Assembly: GCA_029953675.1 (NCBI GenBank) | Contig: JAMWBK010000004.1 | Location: 1,612,001 to 1,676,000, forward strand | DNA length: 64,000 nucleotides | Reading direction: 5' to 3' | From: Rhodosorus marinus CCMP1338 | Taxonomy: Eukaryota; Plantae; Rhodophyta | Part shown: one piece after another, positions 15,009 to 62,100 of the stretch | How the letters are laid out: the number at the start of each line of letters is the position of its first letter | Position numbering within the stretch: the stretch's first letter is position 1 | Notes under the pieces: generated by a model | Seen by the model: only the letters and a program-made list of their open reading frames with translations | Database searches by the model: none | What the model was told of the DNA's origin: nothing | Made by a program: the position numbers and the translations under genes

Positions 15009-15081
15009 GCGGTTTTAGCTCAGTGGTTAGAGCGTCTGCTTTACACGCAGAAGGTCGGGAGTTCGATCCTCCCAAACCGTA
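15009..15081 (+). tRNA. tRNA-Val (anticodon TAC), intronless
   Basis: Cloverleaf: acceptor GCGGTTT/AAACCGT, D arm GCTC-AGTGGTTA-GAGC, anticodon stem TCTGC/GCAGA with loop TTTACAC, T loop GTTCGATCC. Followed by a T6 Pol III terminator. Confidence 0.95.
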
Positions 15082-34996: not shown

Positions 34997-36396
34997 ATGA
35001 AGGGCGGAGATCTGATCGTATCATTCTCGGTGTGTGCTTTGGCGGTGATCTGCGCCGGTCTGTTCGGATATTTTCATGATGATCTCTCGTTTGGGATGGA
35101 CTCGAGGGAAAAATTGCTCCTTCACAGAGCGCTAACTAGGGACTGGATGAGTTGGGAGGACTCAACTACCCCGATTCCAATCTCCTATGCGGCGAAGCTT
35201 ACCAAGTCTATTCTTGCTGGTGAGGTCGAGAATCTTCCTGAGAAGTTGGCCAAAACCGTATCGAAGGATGGCTATCAGACAGTGCACATCAAGAGGGCCT
35301 GGGATTATATTCGCTCGGAACGTCTGGAGCAGATCAAGACGATGTGCACCGCCGACGAGGAGAAATGCAAGGCTTATGTGAACTACGCAGACAAACGATT
35401 CGGACTCACACCCTTGCATCTTTCCTATTTCAATCGGGATGAGAAATTATCAGAGTTTTTGATCGGCCTGGGAGCTGACCCATCAGCAATGGATATGGCC
35501 GGGAGAAAACCGCTAAACATGAGCTTTCCGAGTTTCGTTAACAACTCGCGGAAATGGGCGAAGCAGAGGGGCAGTGCTTGCGAGATTCCAGAGGTGATGT
35601 CGTTTTCGATCATGCACAACGCTTCTCGATGGATATGTTTGAGACTGACAAAGTGTTGGCACTGATTGCGCTCGTCTTGTCCTTCCAGGTTATTGCGGAC
35701 GATACAGGAGAATGGACGAAAGAAGCGAAGAGGCTGATCAGGGAAGGTGAACCGGTGATCATTCGAGGTGTCGTAAAGGACAACGTACCCACATTGGAGG
35801 AACTTGTGAGCAAGTTTGGAAATACAACTGTAAGAGTTGGTTCTGTCCCATATGCGGACTATTTTGGATTGAATATTGAGCACATAAAGCTCAGCGATTT
35901 CATTGCGAGAAGTGTTCGAGGTGACGACGATGGACAGCTTCCCATGTACGTGTTTGCGAAGGATGCGAAAATCAGCTCAGAGTTTTTCGAGCTCATGGCG
36001 ACCTTAGTACGCAAAGCCTTCCCTGTTCCAGACATTTTCGACGATCCAAGTAAGATCGGGCCGAGCGCGCTTCATTTTGCACTCGGACGGGAAGGTTCTG
36101 GTGCGCCAATGCACATCCATTCTGATGCTCTCAACCTAGTTCTTGCCGGCAAGAAGCGTTGGTTCGTCCTTCCCCCACAAGATGCGATCTACTCAAGGAA
36201 GCACATCTCAACATGGGTCAAGGAGGATTTGCCAACAGCTGACCCGAAACCATTGGAATGCGTGCAGAACGCTGGGGACGCAATTTATGTACCGTTCGAC
36301 TGGGCTCACGGTGTGATTAATAGTGGCGAATTCACTTTCGCGTTTGCATTGGAGCTGTTGTCTGATAGAGAGAGCCTGAAAGCATTTAAATGGTAG
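34997..36396 (+). CDS. signal/TM-anchored ankyrin-repeat + JmjC/cupin protein (JMJD8-like), one intron near 35590-35690
   Basis: Hydrophobic N-terminus LIVSFSVCALAVICAGLFGYF; ankyrin FGLTPLHLSY...LIGLGADPSAMDMAGRKP; JmjC FALGREGSGAPMHIH...LAGKKRWFVLPP...QNAGDAIYVPFDWAHGVIN. Confidence 0.8.
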
Positions 36397-39011: not shown

Positions 39012-41339
39012 ATGAGCTCCACAAATGGAGTAGCGGGAGCCTTGCTGAAGCTGGCGAGGTCGAGGATGACGATTGTATCGGCCGTGACGTACCTATGTGC
39101 ATCGGTGCTTGCCCCCGTTAAGTTTCGGATCTGGGGGTATCTGGCTGGTTACTTGTTCGTCTTCGTGACGCAGCTGCAGACCCATTATCTAGGGGAGTAC
39201 TTTGATAGAGATTCAGATCGCATGAATAGGTACTCAGGTGGCTTGACAGGAGGCAGCGGAGCCCTGCGCGACAGCGTCTACGAAAAACTAGCGCTTTACG
39301 GTGGCATTTTTCTGACGTTGCTATCAGCGACCATAATCTACACGATCCTACCTGCCGAGGTTCGGCCACTGGCTCTGGTAATGCTGATATTCGCAAATCA
39401 GTACTCGAGTCCCCCGCTCATCTTGAACCACAGAGCGCTTGGGGAAATCACCGCTACGACTATCTCGAATTTCCTCCTGCCAACGTTTGCGTACATGGTT
39501 CAGATCTCCGGCCAAGAAGAATTCGACTGGTGGACCCTCTGGTACAACTACAAACTGCTTATCGTTCCCCCGGCGCTTCTAAAAGTGTGCCTGTTCCTCG
39601 TGCTGAATATGAACGATCGGAGAGCAGACTGGCAGGGACACAAGACTACCATCCCCGTCCTTTTGGACGAGGCTAACTCCGCCAAACTGCATCTTGTACT
39701 CAGCGGGTTGGCGTACCTCGCGGCTGTGGTGAGCACGGACTATCACCGGCCCCGTGAGATCATCGGTATGGTTCTGGTGGAGGCCACATTCCCCCTGAGT
39801 CTGATCATATCCAGGAAGCTACTTTTTGAGAGAGAATTCCGGCTTGCGAATATGGTCAAGCTCTCCTTTCTGCACGCGCCGCTGCCGGTTAACCTGCTGC
39901 TTCTCAACGGCTTGGTCTGGCGAGCGATCGATTGGTCTGACGCGATCTTCCCAATGATGATGACCGCCATCTACATCTACCTGCAGGCAAGTCCGCTTCT
40001 GGCGCTCGCAGTCAGCGTGGAATCGGCGAGTGAACAAAGGCCGCCAGAAGTGGAATGGATAAACGAAGATTCAAAAGTGATCCTTGTGGGCGCTGGACTA
40101 AGTGGACTGTCCATGGCCCTGTTCCTGAGTCATATGCACGTTCCGTTCGTGGTCATTGAGGAGAGGACTCCGGAGGAGGTGTTGGGTGGGGCCTGCTGTT
40201 CTCTGTGGTCGCCGGCGATTAAAGCTCTAGAGGAGGCCGGGCTGCTGCACCACTTTTGGGAAGAAAAGTCCAGAATCATCAGTGGATTGGAGATTATCGA
40301 CGACAAGAATAAGTGCTCAACGGTGAGCATTGGAGATATTGTCGGCGATTCCAACACGGAGGGCTTTGTCCTGATCTCGAGGTCTTCTCTGATCGAGGCT
40401 ATGAGGGTCCTTGTCCCTCGAGGCAGGATTCATTATGGACAGAAGCTTACTGATCTGAAGATGGAAGCAGACAGGGTCGTTTTGAAGTCATCCACGGTAG
40501 TGGAAGATGGTGAAAGCGAGATGGAGTTCACTGGGCGTGTTGTCGTTGGATGCGACGGCGCACATTCCGTAACAAGGAAGCACTTGTTTGGGGATGAGGA
40601 GCTGAGTTTCCAGTACGAGGTGGCGCATCGAGGGGAAATTGAGTGTTCTGATGAATCCAGTGCTCGTTTAAAGCAGCTCATGAGCCGTAGCTCTGAGGAT
40701 GCGGTGCTCACGATCAAACACAAGCATGGCCTTGAGTACTCAGCCGGGTTTCTGAATTCTGAAGAAAATCGAATATACTGGTTTGTTAGACAGCCGAGCC
40801 TTATTCGGGCTGAGGAGATGACGCCGTTCTCTATAGAGCAGTGCGTCTCTGCGTGGACTCCGGCCTTGAGGGAGTGCTTTGCTCAGACAGATCCCGCGCT
40901 TCGAACCGTTTATTCCATAGACGATGCAAAGAGATTGCAGCGTCTGAGCTCAGATCGAGGAGTGTTAATTGGCGATGCGGCGCACCCTGTGACGGCGAAC
41001 ATGATGGAAGGTGCGAGCCTCTCTGTAGAAGATGCGCTAACGCTGGCAGTGCTTTTGAGGGACTACGTTGCCTATGAAGACGGCCATGTCGAGGCATTCT
41101 ACAAGTTTGAGCGAAGGAGGCAGCGTTACATCCGAGCTGCTGCGGTACAGGCCAAGCGAATGATGAACAATCGAATCGGCAGCTTGTTACCAGCGACGCT
41201 TGTTAAAATACTACCGGAGATGCCCCCCTCAGAATCCTTAAAGCGTAGTCTGCGGCAGACCAAGATCGCCCAGGTGGATGATCTGATCGCCAGACTGAGT
41301 GACTATCACACCGAAAAACAGCCTCTGCTGTCACCGTAG
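39012..41339 (+). CDS. fusion protein: MenA/UBIAD1-type UbiA prenyltransferase (N-terminal, multi-TM) + class-A FAD-dependent monooxygenase (C-terminal); intronless
   Basis: Single ORF. UbiA motifs THYLGEYFDRDSD..N...TGGSGAL, YSSPPLILNHRALGE, LNMNDRRADWQGHKTTIPVLL. FMO motifs VILVGAGLSG (GxGxxG), VVGCDGAHSVTR (DG), LIGDAAHPVTANMMEGASLSVEDA (GD). Confidence 0.9.
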   Translation: MSSTNGVAGALLKLARSRMTIVSAVTYLCASVLAPVKFRIWGYLAGYLFVFVTQLQTHYLGEYFDRDSDRMNRYSGGLTGGSGALRDSVYEKLALYGGIFLTLLSATIIYTILPAEVRPLALVMLIFANQYSSPPLILNHRALGEITATTISNFLLPTFAYMVQISGQEEFDWWTLWYNYKLLIVPPALLKVCLFLVLNMNDRRADWQGHKTTIPVLLDEANSAKLHLVLSGLAYLAAVVSTDYHRPREIIGMVLVEATFPLSLIISRKLLFEREFRLANMVKLSFLHAPLPVNLLLLNGLVWRAIDWSDAIFPMMMTAIYIYLQASPLLALAVSVESASEQRPPEVEWINEDSKVILVGAGLSGLSMALFLSHMHVPFVVIEERTPEEVLGGACCSLWSPAIKALEEAGLLHHFWEEKSRIISGLEIIDDKNKCSTVSIGDIVGDSNTEGFVLISRSSLIEAMRVLVPRGRIHYGQKLTDLKMEADRVVLKSSTVVEDGESEMEFTGRVVVGCDGAHSVTRKHLFGDEELSFQYEVAHRGEIECSDESSARLKQLMSRSSEDAVLTIKHKHGLEYSAGFLNSEENRIYWFVRQPSLIRAEEMTPFSIEQCVSAWTPALRECFAQTDPALRTVYSIDDAKRLQRLSSDRGVLIGDAAHPVTANMMEGASLSVEDALTLAVLLRDYVAYEDGHVEAFYKFERRRQRYIRAAAVQAKRMMNNRIGSLLPATLVKILPEMPPSESLKRSLRQTKIAQVDDLIARLSDYHTEKQPLLSP

Positions 41340-43418: not shown

Positions 43419-44441
43419 CCCCATGCACTGGGGCCTGCCGTGGCGTGGCCTTTGATGTATATATGGAAGAAGTTAAAAACTGTTAACTTGAACAGTACGA
43501 ATCAGGCAAATACTGTCGATAATCTATGAAAATACATATTGTGTAAACTGAATTAGAATTAGGAAGTCCAGTAGGCTTTTTTTTTCTTACATAAAAATAG
43601 AAAGAAGCAAATAATTACGTCTTACTAGGATGTTTACTTCCCCTTTAAAACAAACCCCCCGGGGGAATAAAATTTCCCTGATGACATACTGAAAAAGAGC
43701 GTTCGTTAACCGTTGGTAACCAGAAGCTCTAGATCAAGGGGAAATACTGAAAATATGGCGTAAAATATCTCTAGATCAAAGGCAAAAAGTGAAAATATTT
43801 AAATTAATTCCCATATTTTGGGAACCTATTTCCAAAAACTAGACCTCGAAGTTTCATCACTCCCTTCGTTTGTTCAGCAAATTGTCTTTCTCATCCTTTT
43901 CCTGACATACTCTTCATTTGGGTTTGGGAGAGGCGTAGTACGACAGACATTATTTGTTTTTTTATCCAAAACTTTTCTCCCCTCTTTTCGGTTTGACGGG
44001 GGTGGCCAAGAATTTAGCTCACGTTCCCCCCCTACTTTCATTTTTCTTACATTCACCGCTTATTTCCTTTTATTTGTCAAGCGTTTCAGTTTGAAGTGCA
44101 AACAATTCGGACCAGCCCCATGTGCTTTTTTAAATAAAAAACAAGTTGATGTGTCAGATGAAAGCGATTTCAAATAAATTAAAAATAATTTTAGTTAAAG
44201 GAAAAAAGGGGGGGGGGGGGGATGAAAAATGGAGGATTTTGCATTCGAGTTGGTTGCAGAAATGGAGTGGATGCATACTGTTTGTAGCTGTGGGGATGGG
44301 GTAAGGAGGAGACGAGAGATGAGGAGGGGAATGTAGAAGGAGGCTGGAGAAGCAGACCTGGAAAACCTTCTTATCTTTTTTATCCTTATTATTTTAGCCT
44401 CTGTAGAAGGTTTTTTTTAGAGTTTGGAGTTGACCTCAAGG

Positions 44442-45884
44442 ATGTGTGTTGAGCCTGGAGGTGGGGGTGCGAAGAAGACTGTTGTCTTGAACGTGGTGGC
44501 GTTGACGAAGGACTATTTGTCGGAGGAGGACACGCCCAACATGTGGAATTTTACGAACGGAGGAGGGGACGCTGTGAATTTGATGCCCCCGCTTCCGGCT
44601 GTGACTTGCGTATCGCAGGCGACGTATCTGACTGGCGTCAACCCGTCCGAGCACGGAGTTACTGCGAATGGGTATTATGACGAGGAGCTGAAGCAGATTG
44701 TAAATTGGCACCAGAGCGCCGGGAATGTGAAAGCAGAGAGGTTGTACGCTAAACTGAAGAAGGCGGATCCCAACGCAACTGTTTTCGTTCACACGTGGTG
44801 GCATTCCATGTACGACGAGAACATTGACTACTGCGTTACAGTTCGACCGGAGTACTGCTCAAATGGGAAGAAGATTCCAAACTCTTACACAAAGCCACAC
44901 TCGATGAGAGACCAACTTCATCAGAAATTCGGAAAGTACCCACTTCATCGGTTTTGGGGACCGCTAACTAGCATCCAATCGTCCAGGTGGATCGCGAATA
45001 CTGCTATGGAAGTGGATAAAATGCATGATCCGACCCTTACGATGATCTACCTTCCGCACTTGGACTATTCCCTGCAGAAATACGGAACAGACAAGAGAAT
45101 GAAACACGTAAAAGAGGATCTTAAAATGATTGACGAAGTGGTAGGCGATCTCGTCAGCTACTACCGAGGGAAAGAAGCCGAGGTCGTGATTCTCTCCGAG
45201 TATGGTATATCGCCCGTCACTCGTGCTGTGGATATCAATCGCGTTTTACGAAAGGCCGGCTATATTTCAGTCATAAAGGAACGACAGGGTGAAACTCTGG
45301 ACTACGGAGCGAGCAGAGCCTTTGCTACTGTGGAGCATCAGGTAGCACATGTTCACGTGAACGATAAGACTGCCACTGAGGACGTTAGAAAGCTCCTTTT
45401 GGGTGTCGATGGTATTGCGAAGGTTCTTTCGGAGAGTGAGATGGACCAGACTTACCACGCAGGCAGATGCGGGGACCTCCTCTGCGTAGCTGAACCGGAT
45501 TCATGGTTTACATATTATTTCTGGGAGGAAGAGAAGATGGCACCAGATTACGCTCACTGCGTTGACATACACACGAAGCCTGGCTACGATCCAACGGAGA
45601 TGTTCCTCCGATTCGATAAGCCGGTTCAGCTGTTCGGGTTGATTCATCTCGTTTTCAAAGCCGTGCTCTCACAATTGGTGGGGATACGCACTCTCGTAGA
45701 TGCCACTCCAACTGAAAGGGCGTCAGAAATCCGCGGATCCCATGGAACACTTCCAACTGAGGAGAAATACATGCCACTTTTGTCGAATAGAACAATACGT
45801 GAACTCGTCGGTCATGATAGATCCGTGCCAGTGCCGGCAACGGACGTTTGCAGTCTATTAATGAAAGTCTTGCTTGGAAAGTGA
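44442..45884 (+). CDS. alkaline-phosphatase-superfamily nucleotide pyrophosphatase/phosphodiesterase, EboF-like (bacterial type); intronless
   Basis: KTVVLNVVALT, PLPAVTCVSQATYLTG..PSEHGVTANGYY, NWHQS, YPLHRFWGP..SIQSSRWIA, IYLPHLDYSLQKYG, ILSEYGI, SRAFA..EHQVAHVHVN, WFTYYFW...APDYAHCVDIHTKPGYDP.E, IRGSHG. This pattern matches the EboF-type family I recall from bacterial ebo clusters. Confidence 0.85.
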   Translation: MCVEPGGGGAKKTVVLNVVALTKDYLSEEDTPNMWNFTNGGGDAVNLMPPLPAVTCVSQATYLTGVNPSEHGVTANGYYDEELKQIVNWHQSAGNVKAERLYAKLKKADPNATVFVHTWWHSMYDENIDYCVTVRPEYCSNGKKIPNSYTKPHSMRDQLHQKFGKYPLHRFWGPLTSIQSSRWIANTAMEVDKMHDPTLTMIYLPHLDYSLQKYGTDKRMKHVKEDLKMIDEVVGDLVSYYRGKEAEVVILSEYGISPVTRAVDINRVLRKAGYISVIKERQGETLDYGASRAFATVEHQVAHVHVNDKTATEDVRKLLLGVDGIAKVLSESEMDQTYHAGRCGDLLCVAEPDSWFTYYFWEEEKMAPDYAHCVDIHTKPGYDPTEMFLRFDKPVQLFGLIHLVFKAVLSQLVGIRTLVDATPTERASEIRGSHGTLPTEEKYMPLLSNRTIRELVGHDRSVPVPATDVCSLLMKVLLGK

Positions 45885-46657: not shown

Positions 46658-49600
46658 ATGGCTGTTTTCAAGCGATTGGTTTGGTCATTTTTGCTGCTGG
46701 TTGTCTGGATCGAAGGTTGTTTCGCGAAGATCGATGTGGTCGGTAGGAGCGTTGAATCATCTGAATGGAGTACGCTCGGGATCGGTGCGCCAAGCTCGGT
46801 GTTTTTCTCCCCATCCCGGACTGGGCCCCTGTACTTGGGTACGGATATAGGGGTCGTAGCGGCGTTGTCACGTGATAAGGGCCGTATTCGTAAGTGGATG
46901 CTGGAAATTTTGTTGCCACCTACCCCAAGACTCAAGTTCCTTTGTCAAGGGTTACACCGCTCACCCCACTCCTCCGTTCATTCAGTGTGGAGGTACCTAC
47001 CTCCAGAATTCTCGGAATCGGTGTCGAAAATCATCCTCAACGAGCACGATAGATATCTCGCAGCCGAGAGCATTCAGAAGTCCGGAATGATCTCTATAAG
47101 AGTGTTCTCTAGCTCTGATGGTACCCTTCTGTGGCAGCGCGAAGTTTGCAAACTATCCGGGAAGGCAAAAGTCCACGTGAGATTCGAGCCCAAAAGGATA
47201 CAGCCCCTCGCATGAGATGCATTCTAATCTTCCAAGGCCAAATCCACAGGTGGAGATTGTAGGTGATGAGCAACTGGGCATCCTCTGTTGCGACAACGAG
47301 ATCTCCCTTAGAAGCCTTCGCGATGGCAGCATCATTGCCGAGATGACGTCCTGCGAAGCATCGGATTTGGTTCAAGGCATTGGATCTTGGAAAGATGAAT
47401 CTGGGGACACTGTTGCATCTGTGATCGGTTTCAACGAGCTGAGCAAAAAGACTTTCATCGCAGATGTAAGCTCCAAAGCTCCCTTCCAGAAGCGATTCAG
47501 TTGCCTTACTCCCCTACCACCCTTTGCATCTTGACACAGTTGCAGAGCACGCAGATGAGCACCGAGCAAGGCATGCTGACGTTCACAAGGAGAAAAGAGT
47601 TTGAAGACATAAGTTCTTGTGACAGGGATGGATTCGTGCAAATCAATCGATACATGTTCGCATGCTCAGCTGAGAACGCTCTCTACTTGTTCGATCTTCG
47701 TGCTCAATCATCTCACACTGTACATGATTCACAGCCTTACAAGGTACGAAAACGAAGCAGCTGCTGTGAAGTTTCTGAGCGACGTCTACTCATCGAGAAA
47801 GGCTCATGCCGCACTGATCTTTCTGATACAGATCGACAGCTCGTACCCGATAAGTTCCGATACGATGCAGTACCGGGACGCGTTCGGAGAGGTTCGAGTT
47901 GTGAACTTGGAAAGCTTCGAAACGTTCGCTCTAAGTGATGTTTCAATTGCACACAATGAGCTCTGCGCCAGCGGAGATATCATCGCAACGTCTAAGGTAC
48001 AAGCTTGCCATCCGTACAAGAGCCTTGTTTGCTGAGATGCATCTCAAGTTTGGATGGGTTTCTGTTCCTTAACCTGAGCCACGCTTTTGGCGTTCTGTTT
48101 CCAACTTTGCACGTTCTTAGATCCAAAGTGAGGGCAAAGAGTTGACGATTAGCATGTACAGGGCTAGTGAGTCGTCCACTTTCATAGACGCTCCAGATGA
48201 AAAAGTTGCTGGGAGTGTACGAAGATGTTACCTATCGTCTTTTACGAGCGAGATCGTCTCCGTCACTTCTGGTGGGGATGTCGTCATGAGTAGCTTCGAC
48301 AAGAACAAGCAGGTAAGAAGAGTGACAGTAAAAACGCTGGACGAAAGTCGATGTCTGGGTCTGGCTTAGCTGTGCTCGGATTATTTTTTTTTGGATTTTG
48401 GTGGCAGAGCATCAAATGGATTAGAGAAGAAGCAATTGCTTACGTTACTGATGCAATGTTTGGATCGAGCTTACCCAATGAAGAGGGTGAGTTTGTGGAG
48501 ACATCCCTTTTGCTCTGCTCGGAAAATCATGACAATTCTTAGGACTGCGTTGTCTTACACTTCTTCACGGGTTTGAAAATTCTCTCACAGGGGATGACGG
48601 CGATTGGACATCCACTAGCTTCGCACAGCACTGGTACGATTGGATTAGGTCGAAACTCTTCGAGCATGTTAGCACAGAGGAGCACCGCGCTGTGGTTCTG
48701 CTTTCCAGCAAAGGAAAGATGTTCGGTCTGTCAACCAAGGACGGCAAGAAACTGTGGTCGCGTGAGATCGCGTCTTCCGAAGTTTCGTGGAACTCGAGGC
48801 TTTTTAAACTCGATGACAGTAGAGTCGCCGCGGTGTCGTCCGCCACATGGACGAGCATCGCGGAGTTTCTTAACACGACAAGCGGCGAAGAATACGCAAA
48901 ACCGTTTTCGGAGCGGTTCGCGTTTGTCAACAGCATTCCTTTGAACTCATCCCTCGTCATCCTTGGGTCCAACGGCGAGAATATTGCGGCACCTGATTCT
49001 AAGAAAGGTATGGTCAACCCGCCTTGTGACGCTCTTGATGAAGTACTGACTGAATGCCCTCCCTTCGCACCGAACCGCAGAAGAAAACTTGCGTGATGTC
49101 TACTGGGTAAACTCAAACCGGGACGGCAAATCAATTCAAGGCTATCGTGCTGGAGAAGTCATCTCCGGCGGTTGGCAGGTTGCACCACCTCCAGGAGAGC
49201 GTTTTGCACTCCTTAAGAGCATCCCTGAAGAAGGTACTTTCCTCAAAGTCGGATGCATACGTGCACAGCGACCCCAGCATTGATGACAGCGTTGTCGGCG
49301 CTGACTGTTTTCCCTTTTATCCCTCTCCTCGTTCTGCAGGAGAGTTCATTGCCTCGGCGACCAGGCCAACGGGGAATCGCAGAGTTCTCCACAAGTATAT
49401 TAACAGAATGGCTGTTGCGGCAATCACATCTCCAGAGGAAGGCGATCAAGGTGTAACAGTCTACCTGATTGATGCGGTCAGAGGGAAGGTCTTGGACACG
49501 GCGCATCATGTGAATGGGACAGGGCCAGTATCACTGGTTCGGTGTGAGAACTGGATTGTTTATAGGTAGGCTGACTGGATGCTGCATAGCGTCTTGGGGG

Positions 49601-50834
49601 AAGAGAGAGCGTGTTTCGCTGACTTTTGAAAGATGTCTTTTTGGCCCCGTCTCGTAGTTTTTGGGACGTTGCCAGGAAATCGGATCAGATCTACGTGATT
49701 GACTACTTCGAACCGAGGCAGGACTGGTTTCCGAAAGAAATCGGTCCAGCCGTGCTCAAGGCAGTGACAGGTGGAGAAATTGAGAAAGGTTTGAGAGAGC
49801 TTTTGTGCCTGTGAACTCCAAAATTACGTGCAGACCACTAAACGGAAAGTCGCTTTCTCCTCGGTACAGAGTTGCCAACAACTCCGCACGCGATTCCGAA
49901 TCCAGTTGCAGCTCGTATCGGCTTTGAAGGTAAGTGAACGACGGGAGTTTTGTCGTGCTAGGCACTCCCGAGTGTGTGCAGGGAAGCCTGATAGTTGAGC
50001 GTGTTCTGTGTACGTAGTGGATGGACGAATTACTGGCCTGGATGTGACGACGACCGAACGGGCGATCACCATGCGGAGCATTGTCGTCCATCTAGTACGG
50101 GCTTTCTCGGCTACATGCTCTTTTAAGTACTGTATGGTAGTTGTCGCATTGTTTGTATTGAACGAGTTCCTTGTTTTCTCTCCGAAAAGGATAAGTCACG
50201 CATAGTGGTGCTGCCGAAGGAAGTATTGGACCCTCGTCGACCCGTTGGAGTTCCTACAGAAGAACATAGGGTGCGAAGAACAGAGCTGTAGTGTTGGTTT
50301 CACACAATTTTGTACAAGCGAATTTTTGGACTAATCATCCATCTCTTGATCTTAGTAGGCTGAGATGTTGATGCCTTACAATCCGTTTATCAGTCTCCTG
50401 GTCGGATCCGTATACGCGAGCAAGGACCTGTTAATTCCGGGCTTGAGGAACAGTTTCACCGCGCCCGTGAGGGGGAGGGAAAGTAGCTCACATGTTCTCG
50501 CGGTGAGTAGTACTCTTTACTGGCAAAACGCGATGGACCTGAAGCTCACCGAGATCTATTCCACTGCTCTAGTCTGGGATTGATATCTTCCACACTGTAC
50601 TTGCGCCAGCCGGTAAATTTGACGCGCTCACGGTAAGTTTACAGGAACCGAAAATGAGGAAGCGACGGCTGCATTGAGAAGGCTGGACTTATTGATTACT
50701 ACTACGTGCGAATCCAGGATGAGTTTATGTACACCACAGTTCAAATAGCGCTCGTCATAATGATCATGAGCACACTTGTGCTAAGAATCCTGTCTTCCAA
50801 ACTCATGAGAAGCCGCGCGTGGCTGCAGGGCTAG
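46658..50834 (+). CDS. EMC1: ER membrane protein complex subunit 1 (multi-exon)
   Basis: Signal peptide, beta-propeller repeats, then GNRRVLHKYIN, VYLIDAVRGKVL, GPVSLVRCENWIVY, TERAITMRSIV, LPKEVLDPRRP, LMPYNP, RESSSHVLAV, APAGKFDALT and a C-terminal TM helix. Confidence 0.9.
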
Positions 50835-52384: not shown

Positions 52385-53113
52385 ATGACTACGTTTACCA
52401 TACCCCCGCCCGAGGCTTACGACGGCAAGCGGGATGTCGTCAAAATTCAGACGTTCGTAGCCTCACTGCGCTACTTGAACTTCCATCACGTAGCAGACTC
52501 CGGCCGCCAGTCAGTCCAGTACGCGGGGCTGTTTTTGAGAGCCCAGGCCCAGGTCTGGTACCAGGGTCTTCGACAAGCGGCGGATGGCATCCCGGAGGCA
52601 CTGGACTCTCTCGAAGACTTCGAACAGGCCCTGCGAGGACAGTTCGAGCCTCACGACCATATCGAGCGAGTCCGGGCCAAACTGCGCAGCGCTCGACAAC
52701 GCGGCCCTGATGTCACCCGTTATGTCGAGTATCTGGATGAACTTTTCCTGCAATTGGGCGAGTTCATCAGCGACTCTGAAAGGCTGGAGCGCTTTAAGGC
52801 GGGCTTGACTGGTCGTGAGCGAGACTTCGTCTACTATGGTCGACCCAAGACCTATGAAGAAGCGAAAGCCATCGCATTGAGCCTGGCGGGTGCCCACGAG
52901 ATGCCGAAGGAAGCGACGAAGGGATCCTCGGATCCACCAAGAAGCAAACCCCGCACAACGTCACCGCGCCGGCCCCACACGCGCAGCATGGGGTCACCGC
53001 CAACCTGCTACAAGTGTCAAGAGGTAGGACACTTTAAACGAGATTGCCCCCGGCGACTGGCGTATTTGCAGGCGGAGGTGACACGCTTGTCGAGCCTACA
53101 GGAGGAAAACTAA
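52385..53113 (+). CDS. retrotransposon Gag with CCHC zinc knuckle
   Basis: PPPEAYDGKRD...AQVWY...FEQALRGQF...VTRYVEYLDELF...ERFKAGL...PKTYEEAKAIA...CYKCQEVGHFKRDC. Confidence 0.9.
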   Translation: MTTFTIPPPEAYDGKRDVVKIQTFVASLRYLNFHHVADSGRQSVQYAGLFLRAQAQVWYQGLRQAADGIPEALDSLEDFEQALRGQFEPHDHIERVRAKLRSARQRGPDVTRYVEYLDELFLQLGEFISDSERLERFKAGLTGRERDFVYYGRPKTYEEAKAIALSLAGAHEMPKEATKGSSDPPRSKPRTTSPRRPHTRSMGSPPTCYKCQEVGHFKRDCPRRLAYLQAEVTRLSSLQEEN

Positions 53114-53763
53114 CGGACTCCGGACGAGGGATGCCGTCCGAGAGTCCAACGACCAGCATCCCAACCGTTGGGTTACAGCAACGGGGTAATGCAGGCCTAA
53201 CTGCAATAGGCGTGGTGGCGGCGGAACCGGTGGAATGTCTCATCGACACCGGTGCGGTGACGGCAATTAGAGAGGACGTTGCGAAAGCCGCCAACCTACC
53301 GAGGTACGACGAGCCACGGACATACAGGTTGGCTGTCGGTGAGGAGACTGTGATCAGCCCCGGAGTGACGGAGACAACGATCACACTCCAGGGACGACAA
53401 TTCAATACGAAGCTGCGAATATTCAAGCATCTAAGCCACGATGTATACTTAGGTCTCGATTTCTTGAGGCAACATCGGATAACTGTCGATTGTAGCGCGG
53501 AACCCCCACAGCTGGTACTGGGAGCGGAAGACACCAGCATGCGGGGGATAACAAGTATGGAGACGGAGGAAGAAATAGGGGAGAGGTCTGGCGCGGTCAT
53601 CCGGGAAGGGAAAGGCCTAGAGAAAGGCGGAAAGGACCAGGTTGCCGACCCAGGAGAGAAGTTTTCCCGGCTCACGGCACCAAACTCACGGCACCAAACT
53701 TCTCTCCTGGGTCGGCAACCTGGTCCTTTCCGCCTTTCTCTAGGCCTTTCCCTTCCCGGATGA
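53104..53763 (+). CDS. retroviral-type aspartic protease in the -1 frame to gag, running into the hairpin and terminating there
   Basis: VECLIDTGAVT (DTG), YRLAVG, HDVYLGLDFLRQHRITVDC. G GAA AAC TAA at the end of gag. Confidence 0.85.
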   Translation, partial: GKLTDSGRGMPSESPTTSIPTVGLQQRGNAGLTAIGVVAAEPVECLIDTGAVTAIREDVAKAANLPRYDEPRTYRLAVGEETVISPGVTETTITLQGRQFNTKLRIFKHLSHDVYLGLDFLRQHRITVDCSAEPPQLVLGAEDTSMRGITSMETEEEIGERSGAVIREGKGLEKGGKDQVADPGEKFSRLTAPNSRHQTSLLGRQPGPFRLSLGLSLPG

Positions 53764-57960: not shown

Positions 57961-59187
57961 TCAATTACTTTTCTCCACGTTCTCCATCTTCGTGGTATTT
58001 CTCGCTTCCTTCACTACCTTCGCGCCGTACGCGCTCCCAATGTAGTTTGCAACGTTATTAGCCAGATTAATGCTTTCAATGTCACCCATTCTCTCCTCTG
58101 TGTCGAAAAAGCCAACGACTGCTCTACACCTTCCATTCACAACAACCGGTACCGCAAAACAAGAGTTCACTCCATGTCGAAGCGCAATCTCCTTCCTCAA
58201 AAATCCATGCGATCCGGACGGGTCCTGAACCGACTCCGCTCTCAGGGTATCGTATACTCGGCCAATAAGGCCCTGACCAGGCTGGAAGGTAAACTGGTTG
58301 CTCTTCGATCGGAATCGTTCCAAGCATTGTCCCAAACTATTATCTGTCGCACTAAGCAAACCTCCCTTCAGCTGCAATGTCGTATTAATGCGATCTCCTG
58401 TGGGCATCCACACCTCGGCATACTTCCATGACTTCTTCATGCAGAGCAAGTTCATTAACGAGTACACCGCATCGTACAGATTGGACGATTTCTCCACAAC
58501 CCCGTCAACCCATTCAAGCAGGTTCTTCCGTGAGCTCATAGCCAAATCCACACTGAGGGAGGACACGTGCTTCTTATATTCCTTCACAAGGTTAATCGAG
58601 TGCTCAAGAACCTGCGACTTGGACAGAGTTCCTCCTTCTTCGGCCTCATCGAGCTCTGAAACAAGATCAGAAAGCTCGCGGAACTTATTCCCAACGTTAT
58701 GTCTATACTTTTTCGAATGCTCCTTGTGGGCGGACTTTCTCCTCTTCGGATTCGGTGCCCCGTTGGAATTCGTCCTGGGTGAGACGAGGGACATCATAGA
58801 AGAGCTTGCGGGCATCGCTACTGTTCCACTCTGGAGAGCGTCCTGGGACACGCTCGAGGAGAGTTCGAAGGGTTCCGGGTCGCTCCACGTGTTGCTCCAG
58901 GATGGGTGCGGGGACTCCGTTGATTCCTTCCCGTCATAGTTCTCCTCACTGATAACCTCCTCAAAATTGGGTGGAGAAAGCCATTGCAAGTCAAAGTCAA
59001 ACTGGTTCTTCACAATCAGCGAATTGTCCATCTCCCCATCCACATTATTCGTCACTGAAAAGAAAACATCCTGCTCGCTGGGGTCCACACCTGCCCCAAC
59101 CTCCTCCCGCAAGTGGTTCTCCAACAGAAAATCGGTACTCGCAACACTCCACGAACCCATATTTTTCTCGAAATTAGCACTCATCAT
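57961..59187 (-). CDS. bHLH + C-terminal GAF/MYC_N-like transcription factor, copy B (intronless)
   Basis: KRRKSAHKEHSKKYRHNVGNKFRELSDLV...SKSQVLEHSINLVKEY (bHLH); SWKYAEVWMP...FQPGQGLIGRVY...FLRKEIALRHGVNSCFAVPVVVNGRCRAVVGFF (GAF). Confidence 0.85.
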   Translation of the reverse strand: MMSANFEKNMGSWSVASTDFLLENHLREEVGAGVDPSEQDVFFSVTNNVDGEMDNSLIVKNQFDFDLQWLSPPNFEEVISEENYDGKESTESPHPSWSNTWSDPEPFELSSSVSQDALQSGTVAMPASSSMMSLVSPRTNSNGAPNPKRRKSAHKEHSKKYRHNVGNKFRELSDLVSELDEAEEGGTLSKSQVLEHSINLVKEYKKHVSSLSVDLAMSSRKNLLEWVDGVVEKSSNLYDAVYSLMNLLCMKKSWKYAEVWMPTGDRINTTLQLKGGLLSATDNSLGQCLERFRSKSNQFTFQPGQGLIGRVYDTLRAESVQDPSGSHGFLRKEIALRHGVNSCFAVPVVVNGRCRAVVGFFDTEERMGDIESINLANNVANYIGSAYGAKVVKEARNTTKMENVEKSN

Positions 59188-62100
59188 CTTGCCCAACCCT
59201 AACAGACAGACCAAAGTCTCACAACCCAGATACTCGTTTATATTCCGAGGACACGCCAACAACTGTCTCCACGTGCCAGCGACAGAGAACTCCAGCTAAC
59301 CCTCAAACCTTTTGACTCATAAAGTTTCGGTTAGATGGAGCACGAACCATATCTTTCCCCAGAAAATCGAACGCATAAAATCGAACGCAAGCAGAAGAAA
59401 AACCTCCACAAAACGAAGCACGTGCTGGATATTTACCCTATGCCTCACCTCCCCAACCTTGTTCCGAATTAAAACAAAATGACACCTTTTATGTCCACCC
59501 TTCTCATTAACGGGTAAGGCTCCTCTCCCCTATCTTCCCTATGGCAGCCCTTTAGAAGACTTTGCGACGGTTTTCCGGTGAGCTCACATGTAGTCAAGCC
59601 ATCATCGGAGAAATCCTCGAGAGCGATGCAGTGCCAAACCCAAACTCCTCAAAGAAATTTTCGAAATACTCTTTTAGTTGGCAAAATGCCCAGTTTCCGC
59701 TTCCCAAGGCCCGTCTAGGCCTAACCAAAAAAAAAAGAAAGCGCTGCCGGCATTTTCTTCACGGGGGTTACCAGCAGGACTACATTCCATTTATTGGAAT
59801 AAGTGAAATAAATAGACTATCTTTTTAGTTTTCCCTTTTCCACAGCAATCATTCCGGAAGTTCGGAATTGAAATGAGTAGGGAGGGGGGGGAGAGGGAGG
59901 GTGAGTTTGGATGAGACCATTAATTGAAATTGAATGGTCCCGAATACTCTTATTGGAATCATGAAAGGGGGGAACTCTTATTTGTTAAAGACTTGAGAAA
60001 GTTTAGTAATACTTTCATATTATTATAGAAGATCGATTTAGATACTTTTTAAAGGGGGGGGGGTAAGCCATGTATACACCTCGTGATTAATAGAAATCCT
60101 CATTGCAAGCGTGCTTTTTGTCCCCAGCATACGTGTTTTTGTTTTTTTAAATTTCTAGTCTGTTTTTGTCCTACTCTCGCGATCCGCTTGTGGCAAACTG
60201 GGCACATAGCGCTACCCGATAATCATCATGTGAAGACGCGAATATATGTATTGAAGTACAATTTGGTCGCTCTCTACCCAGAAACGTGCTTTTTGATTGC
60301 TCATGGATACCCAAAAAAAAATTTACGTCTATATATCCTTTGCTTGATTCTGAGGGGTTGTAACCCGTTCCGTTCATATCCTTTTTTGCCGGTGGCTGGG
60401 TCACAATATCCAATTTGTTCGTAATAATTCCGTTTTCGATCAGGATACAAGGTAATTGATAACAAGCCCTGGTCAGTTTGCAGTATTTTACACCAATCAG
60501 CTTGCTTATCGTACTCTATCGTTGTAATAGTTTCTTCAAAATTTGAACTAGTTTGTTTTTGCGTGTGCCGGTTCGTTTATGAAATAGTGTAAAAAGCGTC
60601 TCATTTTGACTTCTTTCCAATTCCTAGGAAATCATCATGGTGGCTCTTCAGGTGCGTCCTGCGTTCTGGACGTAAAATCTCGTTCGTTCGGGAATGTCTC
60701 AAGATGTTTATATTTGAATAATAAATAAAATTGCAACAGTTCGTGTCGGTAGGGGACTGGCGGAGACTACGATCAATGTAAGTTTTTAAAAGTTGTATAG
60801 GAAAAAAATACCCGGAAACAAATTTATGTCAGCGCCAAAGGGTTGGGAGGGGAGTCGTGGATGCCGATAACGAAAAATAAAAATATAATTTGATTCTTTC
60901 TGGGGGAGTTCCGAGTTCAGAAGTTTTGCCCTACCCCCCAAACGGTCCTTTTGGTCCGAAAGAAACTAATCACCTGCAGCCTAAAGGCGAATTTTGAAGG
61001 CGTTCTAAGGACGGGTTTCGTAGCCATTATACCTCCCTTGGGAAGAAACACCTTGCGCCAAACTCTACCTCGGAAGCCGTGGAATTGGCAGCCGACTCCC
61101 CTAATGGACGCCACGCGAGGTAGTACCCCCTTTTTCGTAGAGAGACACCGTGCGAAGGAGACATACGAATGTGTCTACCGCGCAGCCTACTGTTCAAAAA
61201 AACAAACAACGTCAAGCACAGAAGCGAAACGCTCTTCTTATCCCCTTCTCCTCGTGGCGAAGAGGGACGGGTGGGAGGTGGGGGGGGTGGTTGTGTGTCA
61301 AACCCATGTGTTTTCGTTCTCTTATGAACGCAGAGGATCCAAAATTCCTTGAGAAAATAGATACCACATAACCAGGACGCTTACGAGCCTGGCTTTCCGT
61401 CAATGGAGCTGGAAATAGAGTCTGGCTTTCAACGATTTTCAGTGGGGTTGCCGAGCCGCGGAAAACGCAGAACGCCAGAAAAGAAATTCAGAAGAAAACT
61501 GTTGTGCGGCCACGGCCAACCTCAGTGTTTCCAAAATCAGAAATAATTTCAAGGAATATCGCTTATTGACTGGTGATAACGGGAAACGTTGGAGAACGGT
61601 TGCAATTTCTCATTTTTTTGGATTCCAACAGTGTGGTTCAACCTATTGAAAATATATATATGCTCAAAAACACGCTTTGGAGTATCGGAGGTTTCCCAAT
61701 CAGGATATATTTTGGATATGTGAAGAAAACTATATTTACTGGAAAACAATTTACCGGTACAACACGGACAGTCTGTCTTAAAAAATTTCTAGTTTATTGG
61801 AAGGGGATTCGATACATTGTTGGCGGTCGGTATTTATAAATTTTAATTACAATTATATGTTCATTTCGGATTTTGCTGTTGTGCAGGGGGGGATGTAGAC
61901 TGTACAAGAGAAAACTTCGGTATTTCGAGTAACTCGCTCTGCTGGTGAGGTGAGGGTGCGAATGGGGACCAGTTGAATTTCTATTTGGAGAGGGCTGAGC
62001 TAGTAATTCGAGTCTATTGTTTAGCAGGTTTGGTGTTAATTTACAAGCCTGCTGGCCAGGAAAATCGACATGCTAGATTTCTTGTGTCTGTTCAGTCAAA

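Follow-up and report, generated by a model that had tools for sequence, protein, structure and literature searches.

How a gene typical of a bacterial operon came to stand in a red alga's nuclear genome, and whether its product works there alone or with partners, are the questions raised by the eboF-like gene of Rhodosorus marinus CCMP1338 (44442..45884, plus strand). The gene lies in a 64,000-nucleotide stretch of contig JAMWBK010000004.1 (assembly GCA_029953675.1, positions 1,612,001 to 1,676,000), which was analysed as a whole and is called the window below; coordinates count from its first letter. The ebo operon was named by Yurchenko et al. (2016; PMC5133447), who reported nuclear eboF in Chondrus, Pyropia, Ectocarpus and Plasmodiophora and, in section 3.5 and Table S3, eboF transcripts of two Stylonematophyceae, Rhodosorus marinus UTEX LB 2760 and Bangiopsis sp. 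CCMP1999. As a case of nuclear eboF in eukaryotes, the Rhodosorus gene is already published in that study, and the first-pass annotation of this locus, as it was written, is a rediscovery. What appears to be new is the linkage of eukaryotic eboF with a gene that fuses a UbiA-type prenyltransferase to a flavin monooxygenase (FMO), with a short-chain dehydrogenase/reductase (SDR) gene and with a JmjC/cupin gene; no paper describing such a cluster was found in the part of the literature that was covered, which is an absence of evidence only. Taken as a whole, the data are best explained, in our view on balance, by a nuclear EboF of a eukaryotic clade that serves a pathway shared with the linked UbiA-FMO fusion and does not act alone.

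Identity of the encoded protein

A single open reading frame (ORF) spans 44424..45884 on the plus strand, with 486 aa when counted from a TTG codon and 480 aa from the ATG at 44442, and ends with a TGA stop codon (45882-45884). The intronless ORF of about 480 aa that the first-pass annotation placed at 44442-45884 is intact, and the public gene model of the contig coincides with it. Every motif listed there was found at the expected residues, namely PAVTC (44595..44609, aa 52-56), HLDY (aa 206-209, within HLDYSLQ at 45057..45077), SEYG (45195..45206, aa 252-255), WFTYYFW (aa 355-361), APDYAHCVDIH (aa 367-377), KPGYDP (aa 379-384) and GSHG (45735..45746, aa 432-435), all encoded on the plus strand. 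The predicted product is a Thr-nucleophile enzyme of the alkaline phosphatase superfamily.

In a Pfam scan, the product matched only PF01663 (E 5.6e-52). A search of 5.8 billion proteins returned full-length homologues in thousands, with E-values down to 1e-223. After the eukaryotic ones, the best matches are hundreds of full-length Bacteroidota proteins with 44-47% identity, the top-scoring bacterial matches being Flavobacteriaceae, and the full-length identity of Rhodosorus EboF to its closest bacterial relatives, Bacteroidota and Cyanobacteria included, is 44-48%. In Saonia flava, the homologue (PF01663, Phosphodiest) is the last gene of an operon that runs through EboA, a TatD-like protein, UbiA, a dehydroquinate (DHQ)-synthase-like protein and an unannotated gene in the EboE position. 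The 81 closest bacterial loci (Saonia and 80 named loci from Bacteroidota, Cyanobacteria, Chloroflexota, Gemmatimonadota, Planctomycetota, Verrucomicrobiota and Pseudomonadota) match Rhodosorus EboF at E 1e-117 to 1e-133 with 40-48% identity. The ebo genes adjoin the homologue in 79 of these loci, and all of eboA-E are present in 52, most of the partial loci being explained by short contigs. In an alignment of 57 sequences, all 80 invariant columns are kept in Rhodosorus EboF, including T55, N76, H206-x-D208-Y209-x-x-Q212, S252-E-Y-G255, D369, H377, K379-P-G-Y-D-P384 and G432-S-H-G435. The full-length similarity and the ebo-linked bacterial relatives identify the window protein, as judged from its sequence, as EboF-type.

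This bears out the earlier statement that the motif signature is characteristic of EboF, and the BLASTp and HMM comparison proposed with it gave EboF proteins, not ENPP or PIG enzymes, as best matches, with ENPPs reaching only E ~1e-5. A phosphoethanolamine transferase of the PIG-N/O/G type was considered and rejected, since the best matches are EboF and the 480-aa model is globular with no large multi-pass membrane domain. The literature agrees that the ebo cluster contains a UbiA prenyltransferase (EboC) and is linked to scytonemin in Nostoc. Deletion of eboF abolishes scytonemin in Nostoc, where the ebo pathway is tied to scytonemin export, and abolishes thallusin in Stieleria (thallusin preprint 2026), and the genetic evidence comes from these two bacteria only.

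Rhodosorus EboF falls in one PF01663 subfamily with the EboF that the ebo operon encodes in bacteria and in eustigmatophyte plastids (Yurchenko et al. 2016; Klicki et al. 2018; thallusin preprint 2026). They have in common a non-canonical V/Q/E/Y active-site set, and a UbiA-superfamily prenyltransferase gene is linked in both settings. In contrast, the Rhodosorus gene is nuclear, monocistronic and eukaryotic; its partner is a MenA-like prenyltransferase fused to an FMO, not EboC; and the eukaryotic clade has 11 signature residues and four insertions of its own. In addition, no eboA-E genes stand nearby: tblastn with Saonia EboA-E gave no match better than E 0.2 in the 64-kb window, the part of the genome covered, and no homologues turned up in three further eukaryotic loci that were searched (L003, L005 and L006).

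The conserved core of EboF begins at residue 12 (KKTVVLNVV) and therefore leaves no space for a signal or transit peptide. A transcript product of a related strain in the MMETSP set of marine microbial eukaryote transcriptomes, P0121, is 85% identical and starts at the same Met as Rhodosorus EboF. Both observations indicate a protein without a targeting extension, as the first reading of the sequence had it when it noted no signal peptide, and the absence of such an extension suggests that Rhodosorus EboF is presumably cytosolic. The transcript also shows that eboF is expressed in a close relative.

Gene neighbourhood of eukaryotic eboF

Immediately upstream of eboF and on the same strand stands an intronless gene of 775 aa (39012..41339, plus strand). 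The N-terminal half of its product is a MenA-like prenyltransferase of the UbiA superfamily, with both Asp-rich motifs intact. The C-terminal half is a group-A FMO (FAD_binding_3), and the enzymes that it resembles most are hydroxylases acting on N-heteroaromatic and phenolic acids, namely HpxO, 6-hydroxynicotinate monooxygenase and salicylate hydroxylase. The UbiA-family nature of this neighbour had gone unremarked in the first-pass annotation. Identification of the UbiA domain with EboC was tried and rejected, since it shows no BLASTP similarity to Saonia EboC and does not match NCBIfam NF035940 even at E 1. Its best matches are MenA models, far below their cut-offs; Saonia EboC, used as a control, scores 364 bits against the EboC model.

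In a word-indexed search of the 5.8 billion proteins, the fusion protein retrieved only itself at E<=1e-5, and its relatives came to light solely when the surroundings of eboF homologues were inspected. Metagenomes scanned with an alignment of the fusion gave one short, uninformative contig (L092) only. The Plasmodiophora fusion aligns with that of Rhodosorus over the full length (32% identity, E 6e-97), and brown-algal exons match both halves of the Rhodosorus protein. By sequence comparison, the gene at 39012..41339 is the orthologue of the eboF-adjacent fusion genes in Plasmodiophora, Ectocarpus and Pylaiella, and the UbiA-FMO fusion is a fast-evolving family missed by standard searches.

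The gene order in the window is cupin, fusion, eboF. The first of these (34997..36396, plus strand), just upstream of the fusion gene, encodes an oxygenase of the Cupin_8/JmjC type with a 434-aa model, of which the ORF at 35554-36396 is the C-terminal part. In Ectocarpus and Pylaiella, the order is fusion (plus strand), SDR (minus strand) and eboF (plus strand). In Plasmodiophora brassicae, eboF (plus strand) is followed about 470 bp on by a 766-aa fusion, and in Tribonema an SDR gene adjoins eboF. A further locus (L090), whose EboF groups with amoebozoans, has an SDR gene (minus strand), eboF (plus strand) and, directly downstream, an Ank+Cupin_8/JmjC gene (plus strand). Its SDR is homologous to the eboF-adjacent SDRs of brown algae and Tribonema (E 1e-50 to Ectocarpus), and the Rhodosorus cupin gene matches its Ank+Cupin_8 gene with 41-46% identity (E 3e-57). 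No SDR gene of the cluster type was found in the window, two intergenic spacers included.

Another locus (L093, Logan ERR14949488; 1927-3366 and 5325-6260) holds eboF, a gene without assigned function and an unfused UbiA gene that is homologous to the UbiA half of the fusion (E 1e-18). Its EboF is a deep sister of the eukaryotic clade, with all four clade insertions and only one of the 11 signature residues. The locus may represent an intermediate stage or a relative of the donor. This locus also holds a gene of the leucine-rich repeat (LRR) type.

At least four independent lineages have eboF next to a MenA-like UbiA gene, and the prenyltransferase is fused to a group-A FMO in three of them. 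In Rhodophyta, Phaeophyceae and Rhizaria, between which there is no other synteny, the fusion gene lies no more than 1-2 genes away from eboF. In genomes of about 8,000 genes or more, we infer that a given gene would adjoin eboF by chance with a probability of ~1e-3 or less per lineage. Given this low chance and the lack of other common synteny, the recurring linkage of eboF with the fusion, SDR and JmjC/cupin genes is judged from the compared loci to be real.

In Catenaria anguillulae (L095 7435-9511), a FAD_binding_4 flavoprotein gene stands directly upstream of the eboF homologue. A DprE1-like analogy drawn from this gene was dropped, because Blastocladiella has an unrelated PAPA-1 gene there, and the Catenaria adjacency is probably a coincidence. 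A giant virus as carrier of the cluster was likewise discarded, no eboF having been found among the viral contigs scanned.

Phylogeny and origin

Trees were built solely by the neighbour-joining (NJ) method, on MAFFT alignments of 425-450 trimmed columns with gamma-Poisson distances and 200-300 bootstraps. Against 81 bacterial sequences, the eukaryotic EboF proteins formed one clade with 100% bootstrap, with 11 and then with 22 eukaryotic sequences, and the support was 99% after 72 full-length representatives of 50%-identity clusters had been added. In these trees, Rhodosorus EboF is monophyletic with the sequences of Bangiopsis, the PX clade and Plasmodiophora to the exclusion of bacteria, and the four sequences of stylonematophyte type form a subclade with 100% bootstrap. 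The composition agrees with the 'main' eukaryotic EboF clade, described as disparate, in which Yurchenko et al. (2016, Fig. 8; PMC5133447) found Stylonematophyceae, PX-clade ochrophytes and Plasmodiophora; the Rhodosorus gene belongs to that clade, and a targeting peptide is absent from both. The clade of 22 sequences now comprises red, brown and yellow-green algae, Plasmodiophora, fungi, amoebozoans and a choanoflagellate, with Hyaloraphidium, Protostelium, Soliformovum and Diaphanoeca among the members added. It thereby extends the published one to fungi (Hyaloraphidium, Blastocladiella and Catenaria), to amoebozoans (Protostelium and Soliformovum) and to a choanoflagellate transcriptome.

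Characters that do not depend on distances point the same way: 11 signature residues and four one-residue insertions are common to the clade and absent from at least 90% of the bacterial sequences. In a search with a eukaryotic profile, members scored 662-828 bits and bacteria at most 623 bits, and Ectocarpus, Pylaiella and Scytosiphon were added. Blastocladiella (614 bits) and Plasmodiophora (608 bits) have bacteria-like profile scores, yet both fall inside the clade in the tree, where Catenaria is also a member. Spliceosomal introns are present in the eboF homologues of Hyaloraphidium, Tribonema, Ectocarpus and Pylaiella.

The clade shows 43-47% identity to each of the bacterial phyla sampled, whereas these phyla show 51-67% to one another. 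At E<=1e-30, 265 clusters at 50% identity matched, and among the best 150 representatives 136 are closer to bacteria and 14 to the eukaryotic clade. Other PF01663 members were too divergent to serve as an outgroup, and midpoint rooting with the 72 extra representatives placed the eukaryotic clade within bacterial diversity, with backbone bootstrap <0.1. The family is overwhelmingly bacterial and linked to operons, which argues that EboF is likely of bacterial origin ultimately. The Rhodosorus gene itself is traced by these trees to a eukaryote-only ancestor, either through an ancient acquisition with many losses or through spread from eukaryote to eukaryote.

The bacterium-to-alga transfer proposed earlier can therefore be kept in one part only. 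A bacterial ultimate origin is likely, but a direct transfer does not agree with a eukaryote-only clade that covers several supergroups and has no identifiable donor; HGT (horizontal gene transfer) was already discussed by Yurchenko et al. (2016; PMC5133447), likewise with no donor identifiable and with targeting peptides absent from eukaryotic EboF. A broad ancestral eukaryotic distribution, which had been named as the case against such a transfer, fits the several supergroups; however, the gene occurs in scattered lineages only, and the clade lies within a family that is for the most part bacterial.

Residence in the nuclear genome

For the stylonematophycean red alga R. marinus CCMP1338, GCA_029953675.1 gives the nuclear genome as a pseudo-chromosomal assembly of long reads, with 24,821 introns in 8,392 genes (Lee et al. 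2023, PMC10250338). The eboF gene sits mid-way in the 3,191,941-bp contig between eukaryotic genes. Its GC content, GC at third codon positions (GC3) and relative codon usage (RSCU) are indistinguishable from those of neighbouring genes. Its downstream neighbour on the plus strand is the intron-containing EMC1 gene (46658..50834). An independent short-read assembly (L003, Logan SRR22824290), the second stylonematophyte-like assembly with this adjacency, carries a homologue 67% identical and likewise intronless, with EMC1 next to it. The native composition and the eboF-EMC1 synteny therefore mark eboF as a long-standing resident of the Rhodosorus genome and not as contamination or a chimera. 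The statement that the gene is now nuclear is confirmed by the 3.19-Mb long-read contig, the intron-containing EMC1 flank and the native codon usage, and this proof of nuclear location for the stylonematophyte copy is what the window adds to the published case.

Fold and active site

The AlphaFold2 model of Rhodosorus EboF has a predicted local distance difference test score (pLDDT) of 92.4 and a predicted template modelling score (pTM) of 0.92. The nearest solved folds found by Foldseek are phosphonoacetate hydrolase PhnA, ENPP6, ENPP5 and the nucleotide pyrophosphatase/phosphodiesterase (NPP) of Xanthomonas, with 13-16% identity, and no close solved structure of EboF was among the matches. 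With Xanthomonas NPP, the mammalian ENPPs and PhnA (2gsn, 5egh and 1ei6), EboF has a common fold (Foldseek E 1e-17 to 1e-16, template modelling score 0.55-0.72), and it keeps the Thr nucleophile, the Asn and two metal-site residues, an Asp and a His. It differs from them in its low identity, in about 90 additional residues and in its predicted intracellular location, with no signal peptide or anchor.

Single-sequence and profile alignments to Xac NPP (the Xanthomonas enzyme), PhnA and ENPP4 gave mutually consistent catalytic positions. Thr55, within PAVTC, falls in line with Thr90, which is the nucleophile in Xanthomonas NPP, and also with the PhnA Thr. Asn111 of the Xac enzyme is kept as Asn76, and its metal ligands Asp210 and His363 are kept as Asp208 (in HLDYSLQ) and His434 (in GSHG). 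The other four of the six canonical metal ligands are replaced, with Val19 for Asp54, Gln212 for His214, Glu253 for Asp257 and Tyr254 for His258. These replacements are invariant or nearly so in bacterial and eukaryotic EboF, the HLDYSLQ and SEYG motifs being family-invariant. By these alignments, the EboF family is a separate branch with a remodelled, oxygen-rich metal site, and we infer from the altered site that EboF is not a classical two-zinc nucleotide pyrophosphatase. The name 'nucleotide pyrophosphatase', which the first-pass annotation had used, is merely that of the Pfam family and does not suit a protein family with this metal site.

In the eukaryotic proteins, residues 396-415 form a hydrophobic helix (LFGLIHLVFKAVLSQLVGI) with lower pLDDT, whereas bacterial EboF is basic there (KIIWKLLKKKLGFR). 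The stretch 396-413 contains the most hydrophobic 19-mer of eukaryotic EboF, and the aligned bacterial segment is basic. The helix at 396-415 may be a membrane-docking element.

A proposed pathway and its alternatives

The reading that we hold to be on balance probable, a nuclear EboF in a pathway shared with the fusion protein, can be set out as follows. The eboF, fusion, SDR and cupin genes would belong to one pathway and would have travelled or been retained together. EboF would be the soluble phosphoryl-transfer partner of a membrane prenyltransferase, as bacterial EboF accompanies EboC, and the target of Thr55 would be a diphosphate or a phosphate mono- or diester, carried by the prenyl donor or else by a phosphorylated acceptor or product. 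The fusion protein would prenylate and hydroxylate an aromatic head group, the SDR and JmjC enzymes would tailor it, and the resulting (hetero)aromatic metabolite would be both prenylated and hydroxylated.

A phosphoryl-transfer or hydrolysis step serving prenylation is one of two EboF roles weighed by Yurchenko et al. (2016; PMC5133447), and the eukaryotic linkage favours this role because EboD is absent there. Without EboA, B, D and E, eukaryotic EboF is still paired with a UbiA-type prenyltransferase, which points to prenylation and not to cyclitol formation. Sets with a UbiA-type prenyltransferase, a flavin monooxygenase and an SDR are known from the aurachin (AuaA/AuaG/AuaH), fungal (Pyr6/Pyr5) and coenzyme Q (Coq2/Coq6) pathways. 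These fungal and bacterial meroterpenoid and prenylquinone sets comprise the same enzyme classes as the eukaryotic eboF cluster (a membrane aromatic prenyltransferase, a group-A FMO and an SDR), a likeness at the level of class; unlike them, the eboF cluster has the prenyltransferase and the FMO as one polypeptide, together with EboF.

More tentatively, and with considerable doubt, eboF, the fusion gene, a dedicated SDR gene and the JmjC/cupin gene could be a compact biosynthetic cluster, retained in or passed between distant eukaryotes (red, brown and yellow-green algae, plasmodiophorids and amoebozoan-like protists) and yielding a (hetero)aromatic compound, prenylated and hydroxylated, that is the counterpart of bacterial ebo products such as saccharoquinoline and thallusin. 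Certain algae and protists would in that case produce an ebo-like signal of their own, and the functional core that the ebo system has conserved in both domains would be EboF paired with a UbiA prenyltransferase. The linkage is a possible further example of a metabolic gene cluster common to several eukaryotic supergroups, and it narrows the genes for expression and assay down to a minimal set of two to four.

Several observations weigh against a shared pathway. The chemistry ascribed to EboF is taken from its superfamily alone, and other invariant His and Asp residues may rebuild a metal site. The UbiA partner is not EboC, so that the parallel with the bacterial operon would be one of function and not of descent. 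No cluster was found within 10 kb of eboF in the three fungal loci (Hyaloraphidium, Blastocladiella and Catenaria), and no fusion gene in the 3.9 kb upstream of eboF on the short contig L003. All four genes stand together in no single locus. In addition, the trees are NJ trees only, and the backbone that places the eukaryotic clade inside bacteria is unsupported (bootstrap <0.1).

Yurchenko et al. (2016, PMC5133447) inferred that EboF works without partners in eukaryotes, which would make it a stand-alone cytosolic hydrolase and its neighbours hitch-hikers or coincidence. That study found no other ebo genes in these eukaryotes, and both the absence of eboA-E homologues from the window and the other eukaryotic loci tested and the fungal loci without a cluster agree with it. 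We nevertheless regard a stand-alone enzyme as unlikely, since homologous fusion genes lie 1-2 genes from eboF in Rhodophyta, Phaeophyceae and Rhizaria, and homologous SDR and cupin genes recur, at the low chance of adjacency given above. These conserved neighbours, on what is now a chromosome-scale nuclear contig, contradict partner independence, and the linkage revises that inference. A canonical NPP/ENPP-like nucleotide pyrophosphatase or phosphodiesterase would account for the PF01663 match, the NPP-type fold and the conserved Thr nucleophile, Asn76, Asp208 and His434; it is nonetheless improbable, with the changes of Asp54 to Val, His214 to Gln, Asp257 to Glu and His258 to Tyr across the family, an identity of 13-16% to any solved NPP, no secretion signal, and a bacterial genetic context that is a meroterpenoid pathway.

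As to origin, eboF could have passed by itself, in one direct transfer, from a bacterium such as a member of the Bacteroidota that has an ebo operon into the nuclear genome of Rhodosorus or of the stylonematophytes. Such a transfer would suit a family that is mostly bacterial (136 of the best 150 cluster representatives), the Flavobacteriaceae at the top of the bacterial matches, and an intronless gene in a genome that averages about three introns per gene. However, Rhodosorus EboF is equally distant (43-47%) from all bacterial phyla sampled, a bootstrap of 99-100% unites it with 21 further sequences from eukaryotes, with four insertions in common, and its neighbour, the UbiA-FMO fusion, is likewise common to other eukaryotes, so that there is little to recommend a direct transfer. 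A gene or cluster present near the last eukaryotic common ancestor (LECA), lost in most lineages and not transferred between eukaryotes, would explain one supported clade with a long stem over Archaeplastida, Stramenopiles, Rhizaria, Opisthokonta and Amoebozoa, as well as introns gained in several lineages. Against such descent stand a very patchy distribution inside each supergroup and a branching that departs from the organismal tree, with the choanoflagellate among ochrophytes (0.95-0.96) and the fungi not with the choanoflagellate; moreover, a cluster kept for more than 1 billion years would be unusual. We consider it doubtful, to about the same degree as a stand-alone enzyme. Bacterial contamination or a chimeric assembly has nothing in its favour besides the bacterial affinity of the EboF family. 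It is contradicted by the mid-contig position among eukaryotic genes on 3.19 Mb of long-read sequence, the native composition, the eboF-EMC1 junction that recurs in an independent assembly of another species and the expression of the gene in a related strain, and its probability is negligible.

Other features of the window

The spacer between the fusion gene and eboF is 3.1 kb long, low in GC (0.435) and repeat-like, with a run of about 13 G at 44210-44225; coding similarity was sought in it and none was seen. Beyond EMC1 stands a capsid (gag-like) gene of the Ty3/PEG10 type (52385-53495, plus strand), locally GC-rich (0.548 at 52-54 kb), which is probably a retrotransposon remnant. Elsewhere in the window, there are pentatricopeptide repeat (PPR) and APC4 ORFs, and only one transfer RNA (tRNA) gene (15009-15081, plus strand; Rfam RF00005, 72.8 bits). 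An ORF of 433 aa on the minus strand (57961-59262, bHLH-GAF) encodes both a helix-loop-helix DNA-binding domain and a GAF domain, an uncommon combination.

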